Shown in pieces: positions 5,601 through 55,396 of a DNA stretch of 64,000 nucleotides. Location of the stretch: the IMG/VR virus record IMGVR_UViG_3300027770_001980, positions 124,001 through 188,000 of that record; one strand, given 5' to 3'. Within the stretch, counting starts at the first letter, position 1. Every line of letters starts with the position of its first letter. The position numbers and the translations under genes are program-made. The notes beneath the pieces were generated by a model. The model had not been told where the DNA came from. It saw only the letters and a program-made list of their open reading frames with translations, and did no database searches.

Positions 5601-6530
5601 TCCCCTTTCAGTAACATCTACATCGATGTTAGTAAGCATTATAGGAAAATATCTTGTTGAATCTTCAATTTCCATTGGTTCTGGCAAATCCTCATCATCA
5701 GGATATCCGTAAAATTGCATCTTAAGTAGTAGACAACAATCTAAATAACTCTCATAACCTGCGGCAATGGCTGCGACATACAATGCTTCAATAAATCCAT
5801 TCATACTATAAGGTTCAATTACCTCAAATGTCATAGTAGTAGGGGTAGTAGAATTACTTTTATCATCAGATGTCATTATGGTGCCAATAGTGACATCGTT
5901 TATATACATATCAAATCTACCAGGACTTTTAGCGTTGAATCCTTCTACGATGTCCTTGGCACCGTAATCCATTTTTTTAATATCTTGTTTTACTGTTTTG
6001 TTAATCTTTTGAAAATTATCTCGGCCGACTCTTTTGCGTTCTGTAACGGTGACTTCTTTTTGCCCAACAACCCGCTCAATTGGTATAACATCTGTTGTTA
6101 TACCTGTATATCCTTTACCACCGGATTTTAATATGGTGTATTTTAATTCTGCATCTCGATATGCTTCTGGTTGACTGGCCTCGTCTTTTTCCAGCATGGC
6201 TAAAGTGAAGTTATAGGTTACCGACCTATAACCATTTAATACATTGTTTTTACCCGATGATACTACTTCCTGCTCAGATAGAGCATCAAAGCTATCATTG
6301 TTTTTTTTCTCAACGTTTTCAGAACCTTTAAATCCTTGTTTTGATTGTCTTGCTAATCTTGCAGATTCAGCATCCGATTCATTTTCTGCAGGGGCGGTGG
6401 TTCCACCAAGCCATGTAGGAAGGAGAGAAGAAATTTTCCATCCTTGATCTTTATTATAGTTAGCTGCCGAAGGACCTGCTGGATTCTTCTTGGCTTCAGC
6501 TGGAGTTTTTCCTGCAAAACCTACCGCCAT
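2622..6530 (-). CDS. Large baseplate hub/tail-associated structural protein (1302 aa) with low-complexity S/A/G/L-rich C-terminal half
   Basis: Long ORF with SD AGGAG; sits between gp53-like and gp5-like genes; hub-like motif GEMQILGDPFYL. Confidence 0.6.
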   Translation of the reverse strand: MAVGFAGKTPAEAKKNPAGPSAANYNKDQGWKISSLLPTWLGGTTAPAENESDAESARLARQSKQGFKGSENVEKKNNDSFDALSEQEVVSSGKNNVLNGYRSVTYNFTLAMLEKDEASQPEAYRDAELKYTILKSGGKGYTGITTDVIPIERVVGQKEVTVTERKRVGRDNFQKINKTVKQDIKKMDYGAKDIVEGFNAKSPGRFDMYINDVTIGTIMTSDDKSNSTTPTTMTFEVIEPYSMNGFIEALYVAAIAAGYESYLDCCLLLKMQFYGYPDDEDLPEPMEIEDSTRYFPIMLTNIDVDVTERGTRYKCEATASTDRAFGKPAEVKKPIKMEGSTIGEILNNFIANMNQQVKESDDKSKKEKPKDYDTYEIVFPSRNAKGELVDNPPNLAIKNKKLNQILQDNILYSMPEPGDTKKPNGYQSDKAEKPTPADQAKKPESIKYIPGKTVVNFPQGLKINDAITSVIKDSEYVKDIIESVAKKKNPNIPDQFGFIEYFIINVETTNKKEKNSDTKKYYQHFKFLVVPYKVHYTRIPGYSQMDIKEETLKKSSTRTYNYIYTGQNTDVLSFKLNFNTLFFEAVPADMGNKTAKGAIDGAAPANNVEIKSNTKEQDENMAAYKSRAPAKTATEMPKPPVKVEVTTIKNYTGGVAAQPQSDPYSVMARQMHESVINSKASMVTGEMQILGDPFYLATGGIGNYRPKKEKAPRGTTDDGEVDHTYGSVLVTINFRNPIDYNSFEDGGMLNFDGNRVPFSGVYQVNEVTSTFKDGVFSQKLDIMRMPGQVLDSNLRDSDPADLRSSTPKPEDQVVPNQTRALSPSQRADSNTLAEQLGRGLPDIDTNFTDATGGLGGTIESESGMTIGEIESLNSAVAAGSGGYGTGMTNPSLLNQTMGAVANIDSPISASSIVGQSLPDVGNVTSDIRLQTPDSIASNVRLQSSGLTQIYTQQSLEKVAPTSPYLTIASNVLTGGLPIQRAVGLIGGSLLSSAIESARNIPNIGSGIGKGATVSIDSAVDNLKLPAASVSNITDTKSFGAAALDKLSNIKTEAAGLVGGIGDKVNALRALPADPSSIAAKVGLDTSKLSGLGGALQSKLPSQVKQMIDNVPSNVNLKQAADSGLVLDYISASKIQNIPATPPYSTAPAPQVDLDYAKSVIKQRGPAALADLYGVSSISKLSTNVVPGELIASAKQQVSNLSLNPFDKLKGLTNSIDTSAISDKINSAKDQLSNITGQVKIPDASSLGSVAAKFGSNSLSTPNPVESVIGKDPTALSYSGTNPAVRARLGLPPLPNNNGWGEG

Positions 6531-7830: not shown

Positions 7831-8742
7831 ATGACTACCCACATATCCCCTACTGGGAAAAAAGTAAAATACCTAAACAATCGCGATTTATTGACAGAGA
7901 TACACAGAAGTAAATGCTCATTTGGTAGTTTTACAGATCCAAAATATCAACAACACGACATCATATTAACAAATTTGGATAAAGTTAATATTAGAACCGT
8001 AGCCGAAGCCAAACGTAATAGAGCGAAACGAGAAGGTATATTGGCGTTTGGTGCAGCCAGAATAGCAGGCGATAAAAAAATCAAACTTGCAGAATGCACA
8101 GCAGACTATAAAACCATAGCTAAAACCGATATTGTGATACGTATTATGACTTTTGATCACATACCCATGGCACCGGGACGTAAAAAAACACTAAAGAATA
8201 CAGCCGATAGTCATGAGAAAGTTAACTTTCCTCCTTATCAACATTGGAAGTTTAACGACGAAGATGAATTGATCTGCGTAGGTAAGAGCCACTGGAAAGG
8301 CCCAATCGAAACTGGCAAATTTAGCAAAGATCATGGACGCATTACTGAGAACTTGGGCAGGATGTTTATTAAATTAAGTGAACGATATGCACAAAGAAGC
8401 AACTGGCGGGGGTATACTTACAATGAAGAAATGCGGGGACAGGCGATCCTACAATTAAGTCAAATTGGACTACAGTTTGACGAGAGCAAATCAGAGAACC
8501 CATTTGCATACTACACCGCAGCAGTCACTAACTCATTTACTCGTGTTCTAAATATTGAAAAGAAAAATCAAAACATTCGAGATGACATGTTGGAAGAAGC
8601 CGGATTGACTCCAAGTATGACTCGACAGTATAAACAAGAGTATGCTGAAGAAACTGCTCGTCAAGCAGAACTATACAAACACTTTAGGCAACCTAAATCA
8701 GAAGAAACAAGCATTGAGGAAGATGAGCAAACTGATGTTTGA
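7831..8742 (+). CDS. gp55: Late-transcription sigma factor, T4 gp55-like, with a long internal insertion
   Basis: YLNNRDLL at the N-terminus; NWRGYTYNEEM and SENPFAYYT...SFTRVLNIEKK match gp55-family motifs; adjacent to gp47/gp46 as in T4. Confidence 0.85.
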   Translation: MTTHISPTGKKVKYLNNRDLLTEIHRSKCSFGSFTDPKYQQHDIILTNLDKVNIRTVAEAKRNRAKREGILAFGAARIAGDKKIKLAECTADYKTIAKTDIVIRIMTFDHIPMAPGRKKTLKNTADSHEKVNFPPYQHWKFNDEDELICVGKSHWKGPIETGKFSKDHGRITENLGRMFIKLSERYAQRSNWRGYTYNEEMRGQAILQLSQIGLQFDESKSENPFAYYTAAVTNSFTRVLNIEKKNQNIRDDMLEEAGLTPSMTRQYKQEYAEETARQAELYKHFRQPKSEETSIEEDEQTDV

Positions 8743-49214: not shown

Positions 49215-49867
49215 AAACAAAATCAGTATTCTCATCCAGTAGTTGGTCAACAAAAAAAAGTAAATTAGCAGTTTGCATACCTTGCAGGGATACTCTGCAT
49301 TCTGCACATGCTATGTGTTTAGTTGAATTAGTCAAATTCAACACCATGAACAATATAGACACACATGTGTTTATGGATGCAAGTACTGTATTGCTAACCC
49401 AAAGAGAACGATTGGCCATGATGGCATCGGATCTTAATGCAGAATATACACTTTGGTTAGATAGTGATATGACATTCCCTTCTACTACTGCGGTGAGATT
49501 GATGTCACACAATGAAGAAGTTGTGGCAGCAAATTATGTCAAGCGACAACTGCCTGCTAAGGGTGTGGCCTATGAAAAAATATGGGATTGGCAAAATCCG
49601 TTAGGGTTTGATATACAAGATCAACTAGTTCCTGTAGAGGGAATAGGAATGGGGTGTATGTTAATGAAAACCGATATTTTCCGAGAAATTCCACAACCCT
49701 GGTTTGAATTCCAATGGACTCCTGAATCTAATGATCATCTAGGGGAAGATATGATACTATGTCAAAAGATTGCCAAGACTGGTAGAACTGTTAAAGTTGA
49801 TACTGTATTAAGTCAAGAACTAAGACACCTTGGTACCTGGGCGTTTGGACCAGATCTGTTAAAGTAA
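49211..49867 (+). CDS. Glycosyltransferase, GT-A fold (family 2-like)
   Basis: VCIPCR, LWLDSDM (DxD), GIGMGCML, GEDMILC, KVDT...HLG motifs. Confidence 0.75.
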   Translation: MKTKSVFSSSSWSTKKSKLAVCIPCRDTLHSAHAMCLVELVKFNTMNNIDTHVFMDASTVLLTQRERLAMMASDLNAEYTLWLDSDMTFPSTTAVRLMSHNEEVVAANYVKRQLPAKGVAYEKIWDWQNPLGFDIQDQLVPVEGIGMGCMLMKTDIFREIPQPWFEFQWTPESNDHLGEDMILCQKIAKTGRTVKVDTVLSQELRHLGTWAFGPDLLK

Positions 49868-50299
49868 TTCTAATAATAATTCTATCTTAGCACGAATTAT
49901 CTTGCTACTAAAAGAATTCTTCACACCTCTGTGCAATGGTTTAGGCCATTGATCATAACTAACCCATGCATATCCATCATGCTCATCATTTAGTGATGGG
50001 ATAAATTCTCTATCAACAACTAATACATAGGTATTATATTGAAACTGTTGATCGTTACTTACAAATAATTCTAAAGGTACAACTTTTTTAATAGTAGGTG
50101 TTCGACCTACTTCTTCTTGTATCTCTCTTGTAAGTGCATCAAAGGGAGTTACATCTGACGGTTCTTTTCTACCTCCGACCAATCCCCATGTGCCGGCAGT
50201 ATTAATCTTGGTCCTTGATAATAGTAAGAATCTTTTGGTATCTTTTGCTAAAAATAAACCGCCACTACACACCACTTGATTTACAGTATTAATCTCCAT
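49859..50299 (-). CDS. NUDIX hydrolase
   Basis: Nudix box WGLVGGRKEPSDVTPFDALTREIQEEVG. Confidence 0.85.
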   Translation of the reverse strand: MEINTVNQVVCSGGLFLAKDTKRFLLLSRTKINTAGTWGLVGGRKEPSDVTPFDALTREIQEEVGRTPTIKKVVPLELFVSNDQQFQYNTYVLVVDREFIPSLNDEHDGYAWVSYDQWPKPLHRGVKNSFSSKIIRAKIELLLELL

Positions 50300-51702
50300 A
50301 GTGCTGCATCATAGACGCCCTCATAACTTTTACTCCATGCTCCATTTTCCCACTTATACTGTGTGTTAGTATATGAGTTAGTTATGTATATCACATCTGT
50401 ATGATCAACAGAACTGAAAATCACTTGCCAAGAATCTCCATTCCATTCAATTATATCATTAGCAAATGCTTGAAAATCATCCCCATTATTATTTTTCCAA
50501 GCGTTTGGTCCTGTATATCCAGGTGTTCCAAATTGAATTGTATTATTAATGTCGTTGAGTATTAGATATCTGGTTCCAGCAGCAACTGTTTCGGGATTAT
50601 AAGTTTCAGGATCTATAACTGCATCTATGGTTCCTCTGCCCACAGGATTATAGTTACTGCTTATAGTTGTATTTGTAGGCACACCCGGACTATCGGGGTC
50701 GATATTTAATTTCATAATAAAATCATCATTTGGGTCCAAGCTAATGTAAGCAATAACTTCGTTACCACCAGAGTGCCCAAATCGTAATTGACTTAAACTT
50801 GCTCTAAATCTTCCCGGATGTAAATCTAATATTTTTAACCAAGAAACAGAATTAAGTGGAGAACTGACATCTATATTTTCCCCAAGGCCGTTGGAATTTA
50901 TTAGTCTTGCGGTATTATTCAATACCAACAAATCATATTTTCCTGCTGTAACTACTACACCAGCATCTGGTGTTATACCACCGAACATATCAGCAGCACC
51001 GACTTGGCTGTATTCATTAGCAATAGTACCTTGTGCATTAGAAGAAAATATATTAGATATAATCTTAGTAATGATTCCTAATTTCTTAACTTTAGCAGGA
51101 GGGGTTATCCAAATAGGAGTTTCAAAAGTCATAGTCATTATATCGATGTCTTCGGTGGTACCCTGTGGAATTTGTCGACTTGTCCAATTTACATCATCTA
51201 ACCTTACTGAACTTAAACTGGTCCAGTCGAGATAATTATCAGTGGTTTGTATCTCAAAACTGGGTGTGAAGAAAACTGCTATCTGTTCAAATATTTGTAA
51301 TTTTTGTTCATTGCTGGTAGTCCATATATCTGCATTCATTGTTAACTTATATGGAGTTGGCATGATACGTTCTATGGTATAATTACTACCTTGATTGTTT
51401 GTATACAATCCGGATCCATCATCAAATGCACGTTCTCTAACTTGTATCTTGCCGACAAATGTGGGATCCTGCATACGCTCTCTATCAAATTCTAATTCCT
51501 TGATGTAGCAAGCAATGAACGGAGCACTGGGCATTGTGTTCTCACTATTCTTTTTAAGTATCTGCCCAACTTGTCGAGTCATATCACCATACCGAACAGG
51601 CACCTGGACAAGATTCCCTTTGGCATCTTTGTAAGCATAGTTGCTCATCAGTTGAATAAATTGTGCCAAGTATCTACGTACTTGACCGTCATAAAAATAA
51701 TC
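50281..51702 (-). CDS. gp15: Tail terminator/sheath stabiliser (gp15-like) with C-terminal extension; conserved frame begins at DYFYDGQVRRY without a start codon
   Basis: FYDGQVRRY, VPVRYG, PTPYKL...EQIAVFFTPSF motifs; ORF track starts at an internal TTG (51669) but the conserved frame extends to 51702. Confidence 0.75.
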   Translation of the reverse strand, partial: DYFYDGQVRRYLAQFIQLMSNYAYKDAKGNLVQVPVRYGDMTRQVGQILKKNSENTMPSAPFIACYIKELEFDRERMQDPTFVGKIQVRERAFDDGSGLYTNNQGSNYTIERIMPTPYKLTMNADIWTTSNEQKLQIFEQIAVFFTPSFEIQTTDNYLDWTSLSSVRLDDVNWTSRQIPQGTTEDIDIMTMTFETPIWITPPAKVKKLGIITKIISNIFSSNAQGTIANEYSQVGAADMFGGITPDAGVVVTAGKYDLLVLNNTARLINSNGLGENIDVSSPLNSVSWLKILDLHPGRFRASLSQLRFGHSGGNEVIAYISLDPNDDFIMKLNIDPDSPGVPTNTTISSNYNPVGRGTIDAVIDPETYNPETVAAGTRYLILNDINNTIQFGTPGYTGPNAWKNNNGDDFQAFANDIIEWNGDSWQVIFSSVDHTDVIYITNSYTNTQYKWENGAWSKSYEGVYDAALWRLIL

Positions 51703-51720
51703 CGATTTAGTACAACGGCG

Positions 51721-52287
51721 TTAAACCGAAGCCTCCTTAAGTTGTTTTCGAGCCAATGCTCTCTCAGTTATTGCTGTTTTTCTTGCATTAGCAATTTCTG
51801 GTCCGTATATTTCTTCCCAAGTCATACCTAATTTTTTACCTTTGTTAGCAGAATTTTTGCCTTTATTTGGATGAGACTTACCCTTCATAGGGCCGCCGTC
51901 TTTTCTTTTCCAACCTCCATCTTTACCTTCTGCTTTTCGTCTAGCATGTGCTATTTTTTGAGCACTGCTCATTCGTTGTTTACTTTCTTCTGAATGCAGT
52001 TTATTTCCGCCTGCTTGTCGAATATTAAATCCATTATTAATAGAATCAAATTTTTCTACATATTTTCCTTCAAGCATGTTTAATTCTTCTAAAGAGTTAG
52101 CCGTTGTAAGAACTTCAAATGTAAATGCATCTATTCCGTATTTTCTTAAGGCATTATGAAAATGATACTCTCTTGTGGTATATCGACTATCTGCAATATG
52201 CTCTAATCGTCGTTGATTAGGATTTTGTATAGTTTGACCTATATAGCATCTGTTAGACTCTATATGTGTAAATTTATAAATGTGCAT
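51721..52287 (-). mobile_element. Free-standing GIY-YIG homing endonuclease with NUMOD3 motif, inserted at the gp14/gp15 junction
   Basis: HIYKFTHIESNRCYIGQT (GIY-YIG), RRLEH, FHNALRKYG, catalytic-type E in LNMLEGKY, GFN; NUMOD3 HSEESKQRMS. Confidence 0.85.
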
Positions 52288-52288
52288 G

Positions 52289-53497
52289 TTAGTTATCTGC
52301 TCTTGGTTTTAGTACTTGACTCAACGCTTGACGTTCTTGAACAACTTCTCCAGCAATGGTTGCAGTATTGATATTATTAACAAAACTTGATTTTAGTTTT
52401 CTTCTTACCAATATCGGATTGTCAGTTTGTGTCTCTCCCAACATACTGGTTGTCATTCTAACATTATCTTCATATTTAATCCAATGTTTTCCATCATGCC
52501 TAAACAGCCTATTAGGCAAATAATCTGTTCTTAGAAAGAAATCACCCAATTGAGGATTTGCAGGAAAATTAATTCCAAATCCATATGCTGATCCATTTGG
52601 CGGAATTCCATCACCTGTTAGATATCCAATAAAATAATTTTTAGAAGGTGTATTTAAAACAGCCGATGCATCTAAATATGACATTGACATATCGCCGCTG
52701 GCATCTGTATTTGAAATAGACGCATCTGCAATAGATGCTAATTGCGTTCCTGTATTTTCTATAGGAATTACAAAAAATTGTTCTGTTTTATAACCGCTTG
52801 CTTCAACATCTGCTTGTGCCTGTTGAATAATTTGATTGTTAATCTCAATATTTTTCTTGTAGGTTGACAATAAATCACGTAATGTACTTCCGTCTTCGGC
52901 ACCCGAATCTGCATCAAGAATCTCTTTAAATTCTTGACTATCGACCAACGGAACACATTTAGCTCTAATTAGGTGAGGGTACCATGTTTGACTATATCCC
53001 GATGCTGGCCTATTAACTTCTGATACTACATAAAATCTCTTTAGTGCTACAATACTATCATCTAATGCGTATTCATCTTTCTGGTGTGGTAATTCTATAA
53101 CATCACCGGACATTATTTTTCTACCCAAAGCATCGTAACTACTTCTTAAGTGGAAACTAATCATAACATTATCATTGTTTAAGAACAATCCAAATTGACT
53201 TAAATTAAAATCTAAATCTTGCAAGGTATAAATTCCACGGATAACATACACATCCGGGTCATAGTGTCTATCTCTATTTTCCATGAATAGCAAATCCTGT
53301 ATTCCTAACTCAGGAATAGCAGTTGCTGAATTGTTTGGAATAGTAGGGCTACTGGTTCCTTCTAATGGATCAACGGTCCCTAAATATTTGTGTATATAGA
53401 CATCAGTTCCGCCAACTTGAAATTCTTCGTTGATCACTCGATCTATAAATTTAAAATCATTGCCCTTTTCGGGACGGTACATAGAAAGTCTTGGCAT
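52289..53497 (-). CDS. gp14: Neck protein, gp14-like
   Basis: IQDLLFMENRDRHYD, LSQFGLFL, GDVIELPH motifs; TAAATA-N7-ATG. Confidence 0.7.
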   Translation of the reverse strand: MPRLSMYRPEKGNDFKFIDRVINEEFQVGGTDVYIHKYLGTVDPLEGTSSPTIPNNSATAIPELGIQDLLFMENRDRHYDPDVYVIRGIYTLQDLDFNLSQFGLFLNNDNVMISFHLRSSYDALGRKIMSGDVIELPHQKDEYALDDSIVALKRFYVVSEVNRPASGYSQTWYPHLIRAKCVPLVDSQEFKEILDADSGAEDGSTLRDLLSTYKKNIEINNQIIQQAQADVEASGYKTEQFFVIPIENTGTQLASIADASISNTDASGDMSMSYLDASAVLNTPSKNYFIGYLTGDGIPPNGSAYGFGINFPANPQLGDFFLRTDYLPNRLFRHDGKHWIKYEDNVRMTTSMLGETQTDNPILVRRKLKSSFVNNINTATIAGEVVQERQALSQVLKPRADN

Positions 53498-54341: not shown

Positions 54342-55007
54342 ATGATTATTGGTTTTGTAGGGTTAATTGGTTCGGGCAAAGATACTGCTGCGGATTATTT
54401 GGTTAATTTTCACGGCTTTAGAAGAGATAGTTTTGCCAGCACTCTTAAAGATGCTGTCGCACATGTGTTTGGATGGGATCGAACGTTACTCGAAGGACGC
54501 ACAGCAGAAGCCCGAGAATGGAGAGAACAACGCGACGAATGGTGGTCTGCTCGTTTAGGCAAAAATATAACACCACGCTGGATCCTACAATATTGGGGTA
54601 CTGATTTATGTCGAGTAGGATTCCACGATGACATATGGGTTGCAAGTCTTGAGAATAAGATGCGTAAAACTGGTGATAATATTGTTATCAGTGATGTGCG
54701 TTTTCCTAATGAAATTCGGGCAATACACAATTCAGAAGGAATAGTAGTGCGTATTCAACGAGGATTAGATCCCGAATGGATGGATGCAGCGAAATCATAT
54801 AACCGTGGTCCTAACAGAAACTCTAAATGGTCGTTAAGCAAAGGTAAGTTAGATAAACTAAAAATACATGCAAGTGAATATTCCTGGGTAGGTAGTGATA
54901 TTGATTATACAGTAAACAATGACACCACAATAGATTCACTGTTTGATCAGATACATGCTATTGTTAAAGATCGGGTACCAGATCCCCTTGCCTCCAAGGC
55001 AGCTTGA
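54342..55007 (+). CDS. gp1: Deoxynucleoside monophosphate kinase
   Basis: GFVGLIGSGKDT P-loop; SFASTLKD; PRWILQYWGT; ISDVRFPNE. Confidence 0.9.
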   Translation: MIIGFVGLIGSGKDTAADYLVNFHGFRRDSFASTLKDAVAHVFGWDRTLLEGRTAEAREWREQRDEWWSARLGKNITPRWILQYWGTDLCRVGFHDDIWVASLENKMRKTGDNIVISDVRFPNEIRAIHNSEGIVVRIQRGLDPEWMDAAKSYNRGPNRNSKWSLSKGKLDKLKIHASEYSWVGSDIDYTVNNDTTIDSLFDQIHAIVKDRVPDPLASKAA

Positions 55008-55299
55008 GTTTGTGTAATATTCGTTGACAGTTAGCACACACTGTCTTAAGATTTGTATACCTACAATTAGTTGGATTCCCGTCAATATAGAATACATTAA
55101 ACTGTTCTATATATTTAGAAGTAAAGCCACATTTATCGCATGTGGCTTTCTTTTTGTATCCTGATTTCTGCCATAGCGGGGTGCCATCCTTGCGGTGGCT
55201 GGCACAATGATCACATTTAGATCTGTAGAAGGCTCTACCTTCTTTATAATAGTTAACAGCAACGGGTCTTTGCCCGCATTCTTTACATAGATTTCTCAT
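54964..55299 (-). CDS. Zinc-finger/degenerate HNH protein (start likely MRNLCKEC at 55299)
   Basis: Four CxxC pairs; HNH-like core VFYIDGNPTNCRYTNLKTVCANC lacking the catalytic His; TAAATA at 55334-55329. Confidence 0.65.
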   Translation of the reverse strand: MRNLCKECGQRPVAVNYYKEGRAFYRSKCDHCASHRKDGTPLWQKSGYKKKATCDKCGFTSKYIEQFNVFYIDGNPTNCRYTNLKTVCANCQRILHKLKLPWRQGDLVPDL

Positions 55300-55396
55300 A
55301 TGCGCCCTTTTGTTGCCCTTTTCACTTGTATTTAACCCCTTGTTTTTTTCAAGACCGGCTAAATAACTCAAGTAATCCAATTAGGAGATATTACAT

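Follow-up and report, generated by a model that had tools for sequence, protein, structure and literature searches.

How can an essential phage tail gene be expressed when no start codon lies in its reading frame? This question is raised by a locus in a 64,000-nt stretch of DNA (the window; positions 124,001 to 188,000 of IMG/VR record IMGVR_UViG_3300027770_001980), which is part of a 221-kb contig of an uncultured large phage. An earlier note, made from the sequence alone, had pointed out that a GIY-YIG homing endonuclease ORF occupies the position of the ATG of a gp15-like gene, in frame with it, and that no start codon is left between the endonuclease stop and the conserved N-terminal motif. 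This observation was fully confirmed. The locus, on the minus strand, is built up as follows.

52289..53497 (-): gp14-like virion structural gene (PHROG 11591, E=5e-80), of which the C-terminal ..LKPRADN* is conserved in relatives; its stop TAA (52291-52289) lies 1 nt before the endonuclease ATG
51721..52287 (-): free-standing GIY-YIG homing endonuclease ORF of 188 aa, predicted from sequence, with ATG at 52287-52285, at the position and in the translation-initiation context of the native gp15 start
51732..51738 (-): Shine-Dalgarno (SD) sequence AAGGAGG inside the 3' end of the endonuclease ORF, the inferred ribosome-binding site for gp15
51713..51731 (-): short, thermodynamically weak local hairpin between the SD and the start region (core CGGU/GCCG, loop UUAAC, closing C-G)
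51721..51723 (-): TAA stop of the endonuclease ORF, inside the hairpin loop
51703..51720 (-): 18-nt spacer without in-frame ATG, GTG, TTG or ATH (ATT, ATC or ATA)
51703..51706 (-): ATCG, a near-cognate ATC one base out of frame plus an extra G, at the place of the native ATG
51689..51706 (-): -1-frame mini-ORF ATC GGA TTA TTT TTA TGA (M-G-L-F-L-stop)
50281..51702 (-): gp15-type tail sheath stabiliser/terminator coding sequence from codon 2 (GAT, 51702-51700) to the stop (473 aa)
51667..51669 (-): TTG, codon 13, the first canonical in-frame start; candidate start of a truncated product, judged unlikely

The endonuclease was identified by Pfam PF01541 (E=3e-5; 24.6 bits, with a cut-off of 22.6) and PHROG 314 (E=4e-25), and gp15 by the Pfam profile T4-gp15_tss (E=1.6e-25) and PHROG 11196 (E=3e-85). 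The T4-gp15_tss profile starts matching at the Y of DYFY, and a structure match with T4 gp15 aligns from its residue 4, YFY..RRY. The gp15 frame opens with GAT TAT TTT TAT GAC GGT (D-Y-F-Y-D-G). As uninterrupted relatives read gp14 stop, ATG, GAY TAY TTT, the native N-terminus is M-D-Y-F-Y-D-G-Q, as the earlier note had guessed. An assembly error, the "spurious C" considered in the note, is refuted by independent assemblies: the related junction L034 (L followed by a number denotes related junctions and contigs), from another sample and 97.5 % identical around the junction, has the same ATCG, and in all 20-21 distinct sequences from many samples carry ATCG directly before gp15 codon 2.

Comparison of about 100 distinct related junctions explains most of the arrangement. 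All 74 relatives of the endonuclease lie at the gp14/gp15 junction. Native, HEG+ and remnant alleles occur in near-identical gp15 backgrounds (L010/L012/L013, L016/L017, L119/L195, and L090/L094), and inserts range from 594 nt down to 34 nt, and to 15 nt in L344, with remnants of 15-270 nt being frequent. L068 and L107 have identical flanks with a degraded endonuclease gene. An Rfam scan of the insert yielded only noise at E≤10, 567 of the 585 nt are ORF, and remnants of 15-65 nt keep the arrangement, so that the element is not inside an intron and, as the note had stated, contains no ribozyme. The element is thus a free-standing cassette fixed at one site, not inside an intron or intein. In cultured phages no DNA match was found, and the endonuclease matched at ≤40 % identity over the catalytic domain only.

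The 3' end of the cassette always carries a strong SD, usually a short hairpin, and an altered gp15 start. The SD is retained in every remnant, with deletions stopping exactly at GGAGG and never removing it. The genes of this genome typically use TTAAGGAG 6-10 nt before ATG. Of the upstream ORFs or remnants that reach the module, 29 of 30 distinct remnants and all full-length genes with this module end at the TAA. The spacer is 18 nt in all ATH-type modules and 18 or 19 nt in ATCG types; as it is 19 nt in the L002 group, the in-frame relation between endonuclease and gp15 stressed in the note does not generalise. Neither does the 9-bp stem proposed there: it is the MFE structure of the window, but 55 of 200 shuffled sequences fold as well, it shows no covariation, and it cannot form in L344/L348. 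For the shorter hairpin, RNAalifold gave a 4-bp core, and a 7-bp version has four compensatory pairs, with 0-2 of 500 shuffles being as good. Different stems were seen at the same place in L042, L165, L019, L052, and L367. With this hairpin the distance from SD to start would go from 26 nt to about 7 nt, although the consensus energy is only -3.6 kcal/mol and the z-scores of the module folds (from -1.65 to +0.64) are not significant. The hairpin is dispensable when the SD is close: L071 has AAGGAG, 7 nt, then ATT, and in L344/L348 the ATCG follows 7 nt after a plain SD, in both cases without a hairpin.

The gp15 start itself is altered in several ways. In 53 distinct junctions, ATT, ATC, or ATA replaces ATG exactly, adjacent to codon 2; only one hairpin-type module has ATG. 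L042 has a canonical ATG 8 nt after its hairpin. The ATCG type of the window is invariant in 20-21 distinct junctions across at least nine gp15 lineages. Other types have ATC TCG (in the context ATC TCG CAA), GTG AAC, or ATG plus an extra codon, the canonical cassettes L038/L051 encoding M-S-D/S-F-F-Y. In two diverged contigs, ATG is followed by a T6 run, ATG GAC TTT TTT CTA TGA, with an intact gp15 ORF in the +1 frame; in-frame T5 versions were found only at HEG-less native junctions. L344 has the same UUU UUU CUA UGA in the same frame. The ATCG class appears to be functional: all ATCG loci checked have intact gp15 ORFs of about 470-480 aa, and the N-terminal codons are still under protein-level constraint, codons 4-12 specifying invariant amino acids with many synonymous codons, although conservation of codons 2-12 could partly reflect recombination with normally translated alleles. 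The endonucleases of the window and L002 are only 65 % identical, yet TGTACTAAATCGGA is identical in both.

On this basis, it is proposed that the endonuclease gene has taken over the native gp15 initiation site and that the 3' end of the cassette provides gp15 with a replacement ribosome-binding module, consisting of the strong SD, a short hairpin bringing it close to the start position, and a non-native start. In the window, ribosomes would initiate at the out-of-frame AUC (51706-51704) and regain the gp15 frame by a +1 shift within the first four codons, before the -1-frame UGA at 51691-51689. Either G 51703 would be skipped, giving M-D-Y-F-Y, or peptidyl-tRNA-Phe would slip on UUU-U (51697-51694), giving M-G-L-F-Y. 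A low efficiency would be tolerable because, by analogy with T4 gp15, only a hexamer is needed per virion. The lesions in the start region (ATG to ATH, ATCG, ATC TCG, ATG plus an extra codon, GTG AAC, and an extra T in the Phe-Phe run) are most simply explained as changes that make the resident copy of the target resistant to the endonuclease; every cassette type but one alters the native ATG-GAY/CAR string. The anatomy of the locus, the mobility and decay series of the cassette, the ATH substitution, and the conservation of the ATCG and T6 forms follow directly from the sequences, whereas AUC initiation, the +1 shift and its site, the bridging role of the hairpin, the protective function, and cleavage of the empty allele by the endonuclease with copying of the cassette into it are inferred from sequence alone.

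This reading is given a probability of about 0.5. AUC as the start is supported by L344/L348, in which there is no upstream mini-ORF and an in-frame stop lies 5-8 codons upstream, and the feasibility of a +1 shift by the T6 contigs. On the other hand, +1 shifting directly after an initiator tRNA on a near-cognate codon has no demonstrated precedent, and cryo-EM of near-cognate initiation complexes found the normal frame. In members with CUU-C rather than UUU-Y, slippage would put Leu at the otherwise invariant Phe-4. Slip-friendly features are only weakly enriched in the ATCG class (UUU-Y, p=0.19; -1-frame UGA, p=0.04, both uncorrected for relatedness), and AUC initiation multiplied by an unstimulated frameshift might give too little protein. 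As to protection, T4 free-standing endonucleases often cut far from their own gene. The boldest form of the proposal, in which the gene is naturally expressed from what is effectively a four-base start AUCG, or from an out-of-frame AUG in the T6 class, with obligatory +1 re-phasing, and in which these lesions are maintained because they protect the start region, is put at slightly less likely than not.

The interpretation in the earlier note was partly supported. The relatives rule out splicing, readthrough or hopping fusions, and a truncated protein as general routes. Of its three routes, non-canonical initiation is strongly supported for the relatives with in-frame ATH, but the window needs something more, as its ATC is one base out of frame. 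Direct in-frame initiation on a non-cognate codon of the spacer (AAA 51708-51706 or UCG 51705-51703), positioned by the strong SD and giving M-S-D-Y-F-Y or M-D-Y-F-Y, would require no frameshift; the in-frame TCG is shared with the ATC TCG CAA class, the extra Ser in L038/L051 is evidently tolerated, and AAA, ATC, and TCG all lie 5-8 nt from the SD in L344. However, AAA, UCG, and the ACA of L110/L153 each differ from AUG at two positions, initiation at useful levels on such codons is not known in bacteria, and the invariant feature of the class is the string ATCG, with its near-cognate ATC; this route is considered unlikely. A truncated gp15 from TTG 51669, suggested in the note, or from the ATG at codon 20, functioning without the first 12-19 residues, is not supported. 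TTG is present at codon 13 in the window and several relatives, but across the ATCG class the first canonical start lies at codon 13, 16, 17, 19, 33, or 38, without an SD, and TTG 51669 lies inside a local hairpin (51686-51665). The YFY..RRY motif that would be lost is conserved from this phage to T4 at the extreme N-terminus and keeps its amino acids through synonymous changes.

It is about equally improbable that the ATCG alleles are non-functional and persist by complementation from a second gp15 gene or from co-infecting phages. Homing elements can spread despite a cost, and only 64 kb of the 221-kb contig could be inspected, but no second gp15-like sequence was found in the window, a pattern-limited search returned one gp15 locus for the contig, and the class includes HEG-less remnants that have had time to decay. 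Readthrough or hopping from the endonuclease ORF, the second route of the note, would fit the window, where ORF and gp15 are in frame across one TAA in a hairpin loop preceded by an SD. It is contradicted by the 19-nt spacers of the L002, L147, and L171 groups, by second in-frame stops in L110/L153, and by the absence of an upstream ORF in L119, L122, L123, L191, L129, and L146. The last sense codon is GUU (AGU in L019), and no in-frame GUN or AGY lies before codon 2, so that matched take-off and landing codons are lacking; a 188-aa N-terminal fusion on a hexameric tail terminator also seems implausible. Least likely is correction at the RNA level by splicing with trans factors, editing, or polymerase slippage. 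Joining the upstream AUG to GAU would restore the native N-terminus in the window, and slippage could in principle correct the T6 and U5 runs, but remnants are too small for a ribozyme, and the L002 group has no homopolymer run near the start that could slip. RNA excision, the first route of the note, is contradicted by minimal forms such as L119, which have no upstream AUG to join. A hop from UAC to a downstream UAY fits the window and L002 but not L147, L167, or L171, and a +1 shift at the UAA of the NTG-NNN-TAA mini-ORF fails for L110/L153 and L344/L348; both were rejected.

The T4 gene 60 bypass cassette, with its adjacent homing endonuclease (MobA in a 2022 preprint), also combines an endonuclease with a short non-coding element that alters a conserved essential gene, is thought to protect the resident copy, forces non-standard translation, and is retained when the endonuclease decays or is lost. 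An SD, a stop codon, and RNA structure are part of that element. In the present case there is no 50-nt gap and no dependence on an upstream ORF, the lesion falls on the start codon itself, the proposed solution is non-AUG initiation with or without a 1-nt frame correction, and the nuclease family (GIY-YIG) and the target (tail terminator gp15) differ. In the split ribosome-binding sites of T4 genes 38 and 25, an intervening hairpin shortens an SD-AUG distance of 22-27 nt, as is inferred for the present module; here the start is not AUG, the hairpin is weaker with only modest covariation, and the module belongs to a mobile cassette. As with the free-standing Seg-type GIY-YIG endonucleases and intronless homing of T-even phages, the gene lies between conserved genes, is polymorphic in presence, is probably translated by coupling to the upstream stop, and decays in place, but it sits exactly on the start of the downstream essential gene and replaces its initiation signals. 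AUH codons are used as weak starts (AUU of the infC type), and protective 1-nt "savior" indels are rescued by low-level frameshifting; here the two would be combined within the first four codons of an essential structural gene. Compared with prfB, UUU-U re-pairs perfectly in +1 and CUU-C variants re-pair as in prfB, but the next codon is UUA, followed by UGA, there is no SD at 3 nt, no re-pairing from AUC to UCG, and no stop directly after the shift codon.

If the proposed route is right, reading frame can be set or corrected at the very first codons of a natural essential gene, selfish endonucleases can push a host gene into recoding at its start codon, and the T4 gene 60 case is not a one-off principle but has a second, mechanistically different example. 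The 15-34-nt module, with dozens of natural variants (ATG, ATH, ATCG, T6), is a compact natural object on which start-codon selection, hairpin-bridged ribosome-binding sites, and early-elongation frameshifting can be tested in ordinary laboratory systems. For annotation, gene callers will mis-start or truncate this tail gene in many uncultured phage genomes.

A tRNA scan of the window, covering 64 of the 221 kb, found no phage tRNA that could explain odd initiation, and no promoter was found inside the module on the gene strand. A metagenome scan with a relaxed hairpin pattern, dominated by chance matches, added at least two ordinary ATH junctions. A scan for recurrence of the L041 type (GTG, T7), with a pattern one T too long, returned only an unrelated hit, and this type was seen in a single contig.

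On the minus strand, the junction between the gp14-like gene and the gp15-type gene in the window is built up as follows:

53497-52289 (minus strand): gp14-like virion gene (PHROG 11591), ending with TAA
52287 (minus strand): ATG, one base after the gp14-like stop, opening a 188-aa GIY-YIG endonuclease ORF (Pfam PF01541 above its cut-off; PHROG 314, E=4e-25)
51723-51721 (minus strand): TAA stop of the endonuclease ORF
51720-51703 (minus strand): eighteen bases, followed by GAT TAT TTT TAT GAC GGT, which continues as a 473-codon ORF
51706-51704 (minus strand): ATC, one base out of frame with this ORF
51669 (minus strand): TTG, the first canonical in-frame start

The 473-codon ORF encodes a T4-gp15-type tail sheath stabiliser, as shown by a Pfam match (E=1.6e-25) in which the profile starts at the Y of DYFY, and the protein aligns to the solved T4 gp15 structure from residue 4 of the latter. 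No ATG, GTG, TTG, ATT, ATC, or ATA is located in frame between the TAA and GAT. The observation made in the earlier note, that gp15 lacks a start codon behind an endonuclease ORF, is thus confirmed, and it does not result from an assembly error. A protein-guided search of viral contigs returned 34 gp15 loci, one of which (L034, from a different sample and 97.5% identical around the junction) has the same bases, and later searches raised the number of distinct sequences with ATCG directly before gp15 codon 2 to 20-21, from many samples. Uninterrupted relatives read gp14-stop, 0-2 nt, ATG, GAY TAY TTT. The in-frame string ATG GAY TTT TTC TAY GAY GG alone occurs in more than 120 viral contigs, with 69 different HEG-less upstream contexts, so that M-D-[YF]-F-Y-D-G-Q is the native N-terminus and the target is a widely conserved sequence.

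All 74 loci that encode relatives of the endonuclease carry it at this same junction. The distance from the gp14 stop to gp15 codon 2 takes about 45 values between 34 and 594 nt and is only 15 nt in locus L344. Full genes, in-frame internal deletions, frameshifted wrecks, and tiny remnants were all observed, and the loci L068 and L107 have identical flanks but a degraded gene in L107. In a tree of gp15, native, HEG+, and remnant junctions are interleaved, and near-identical gp15 genes carry different junction types (the locus sets L010/L012/L013, L016/L017, L119/L195, and L090/L094). A 14-codon remnant ORF in L003, L006, and L007 contains a run of nine A's (AAA AAA AAA), from which L010 differs by exactly six A's, suggesting replication slippage during cassette decay with preservation of the frame. 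This is the pattern of a free-standing homing endonuclease that invades, becomes fixed, and decays, although cleavage and homing themselves are inferred from sequence alone.

Every remnant retains the last ~34 nt of the cassette, consisting of AAGGAGG, a short hairpin, and a spacer that abuts gp15 codon 2. The deletions in L119, L122, L123, and L191 stop exactly at GGAGG. In this genome, 40% of the long ORFs are preceded by an SD core, against a background of 7%, and the usual form is TTAAGGAG located 6-10 nt before ATG. The TTAAGGAGG of the module is therefore a standard ribosome-binding site that simply lies about 26 nt from the start position. RNAalifold revealed only a 4-bp core for the hairpin, with a weak consensus energy of -3.6 kcal/mol, while a 7-bp version has four pairs with compensatory changes and performs better than shuffled and slid controls. 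Divergent cassettes have quite different stems at the same place (9 bp in L042, 7 bp in L165, others in L019 and L052, and CGACAG/CTGTCG in L367), but none of the folds is thermodynamically exceptional. The module of L367 and L373, 45 nt before the gp15 match, is HEG+ and combines its fully different 6-bp stem with the same TTTAAT loop and an 18-nt spacer that holds both an in-frame TTG and an adjacent ATC. A canonical ATG lies 8 nt after the hairpin in L042, whereas L071 has AAGGAG, 7 nt, and then ATT without a hairpin, and L344 and L348 have GAGG, 7 nt, and then ATC, also without a hairpin. Together, these data fit a hairpin-bridged ("split") ribosome-binding site of the kind shown for T4 genes 38 and 25, in which the hairpin would be needed only while the SD is far away. 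Such a role is considered likely but has not been shown.

The distinct junctions also show that the start codon is systematically altered. In 53 of these, ATT, ATC, or ATA is present exactly where ATG was, a few have ATC TCG, and 20-21 have ATCG. Eight have a canonical start with an extra codon or changed neighbours (ATG TCT GAT, ATG GCT GAC, ATG AGT TCC, ATG ACT CAG, GTG AAC), and one hairpin-type module has ATG GAC. Two diverged HEG+ contigs from different samples (L374, identical to L369, at about 6478-6500, and L375 at about 6437-6460, both on the minus strand of the locus) end their cassette with GGGGGAGAGGA ATG GAC TTTTTT CTA TGA, with T6 instead of T5. The ATG frame of these contigs reads M-D-F-F-L and stops after 5 codons, while an intact gp15 ORF of ~480 aa lies in the +1 frame. 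In-frame T5 versions were found only at native, HEG-less junctions, in a scan that was not exhaustive. A single HEG+ contig, L041 (3050-3078), has GGGGAGGGTAAGAA GTG GAT followed by T7, where the GTG frame needs a -1 slip on U_UUU_UUU to enter gp15; this single-contig observation could still be a homopolymer error. Nearly every cassette-bearing allele thus disrupts the native string around ATG-GAY. The simplest reason would be that this string is part of the target of the endonuclease and that the resident copy must be resistant, which is the logic proposed for the 50-nt insert of T4 gene 60. This is an inference. Free-standing enzymes of T4 often cut far from their own gene.

Whenever an ATG-initiated ORF reaches the module, it ends at the TAA in the hairpin loop. 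This was observed for full endonuclease genes and for 29 of 30 distinct remnants of 5-69 codons, and never in the other two frames, which is far from the one-in-three expected of random deletions. Yet six minimal forms have no upstream ORF at all, so that termination at this position is not required for gp15 expression. More likely, it prevents ribosomes from running across the gp15 start out of frame, and it may allow re-initiation. The TAA is invariant in the loop (UUUAAC, window 51721-51725, and relatives) even where no ORF ends there, as in L052 and the minimal remnants. The loop GUUUAAC resembles the epsilon translational enhancer of the T7 gene 10 leader, and L042 has UUAAC just before its ATG.

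The interpretation offered in the earlier note was supported only in part, as several of the routes it put forward for making gp15 are at odds with the relatives. RNA excision is contradicted by the absence of an intron signature in an Rfam scan, by remnants that are far too small, and by L119, which has no upstream AUG to join. Readthrough of the TAA or hopping is contradicted by a spacer of 19 nt in the L002, L147, and L171 groups and by a second in-frame stop in L110 and L153, which leaves only AGT ACA TCG, while no landing codon matches the take-off codon. A truncated protein, proposed in the note to start from TTG 51669, is not supported either: within the ATCG class the first canonical in-frame start lies at codon 13, 16, 17, 19, 33, or 38, without an SD, and codons 4-12 keep invariant amino acids through many synonymous codons, for example five different Arg codons at position 10. 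In the window, the TTG is covered by a terminator-like hairpin followed by a T-rich tract inside gp15 codons 7-13 (51665-51686, minus strand), which is probably due to chance. A second copy of gp15 was not found in the window.

The only near-cognate start near the SD is ATC 51706-51704. In L344 (1340-1365) and L348 (minus strand, about 7970-7997), the same AAATCG-GAT junction lies 7 nt after a plain SD, with no hairpin and no mini-ORF. The gp14-like ORF in these two loci is in the same frame as gp15, from which it is separated by one TAA plus 5 or 8 codons, and the intergenic region looks like a further-deleted module (GAGGC-ACCC-AAATCG). Whatever rescues ATCG therefore needs only local sequence, and the stem put forward in the earlier note is irrelevant. 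From ATC, the -1 frame reads ATC GGA TTA TTT TTA TGA, and if translation indeed starts here, as is probable, a +1 shift must occur within these 18 nt. Either the G is skipped at once, in which case AUCG would act as a four-base start and the product would be M-D-Y-F-Y, or tRNA-Phe slips on UUU-U (51697-51694), which would give M-G-L-F-Y. The T6 class can only be rescued by a +1 event on UUU UUU C, which could be ribosomal or, less likely, a consequence of RNA-polymerase slippage, and L344 has the identical UUU UUU CUA UGA in the same frame. This favours slippage of tRNA-Phe. The invariance of C and G in ATCG, together with members that have CUU-C, which would replace the invariant Phe-4 by Leu, favours skipping of the G. 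Slip-friendly features are only weakly enriched in the class. Register ambiguity at near-cognate starts has been considered in published work, but cryo-EM revealed the normal frame. By analogy with T4, gp15 would be needed as one hexamer per virion, so a low yield may be enough. The layout of the junction, the distribution and decay series of the cassette, and the recurrence of the altered starts were observed directly in the sequences, whereas initiation at AUC, the +1 shift and its position, bridging by the hairpin, cleavage and homing by the endonuclease, and resistance of the resident copy are inferred.

Each of the ingredients has a precedent, namely intronless homing, a split ribosome-binding site, near-cognate initiation, and compensatory frameshifting at protective indels. 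The closest system is the gene-60 bypass cassette with its endonuclease, which is still called unique in the 2022 survey of that cassette. No description of the present cassette was found in the literature, and no cultured relative was found. The ATCG class of the window, together with the T6 class, poses a recoding problem that is backed by unusually rich natural variation.

Elsewhere in the window, a Cys-rich ORF of 138 aa (54964-55380, minus strand), next to a dNMP kinase gene, has a weak HNH_3 match (E=0.005, below the cut-off) and is possibly a second, HNH-type endonuclease. Directly downstream of gp15 lies a NUDIX hydrolase gene (49859-50299, minus strand), which is the same neighbourhood as in PA5oct-like Pseudomonas jumbo phages. 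With 34% gp15 identity to PA5oct, Atu_ph07, and Phosso, this places the contig among large myoviruses.
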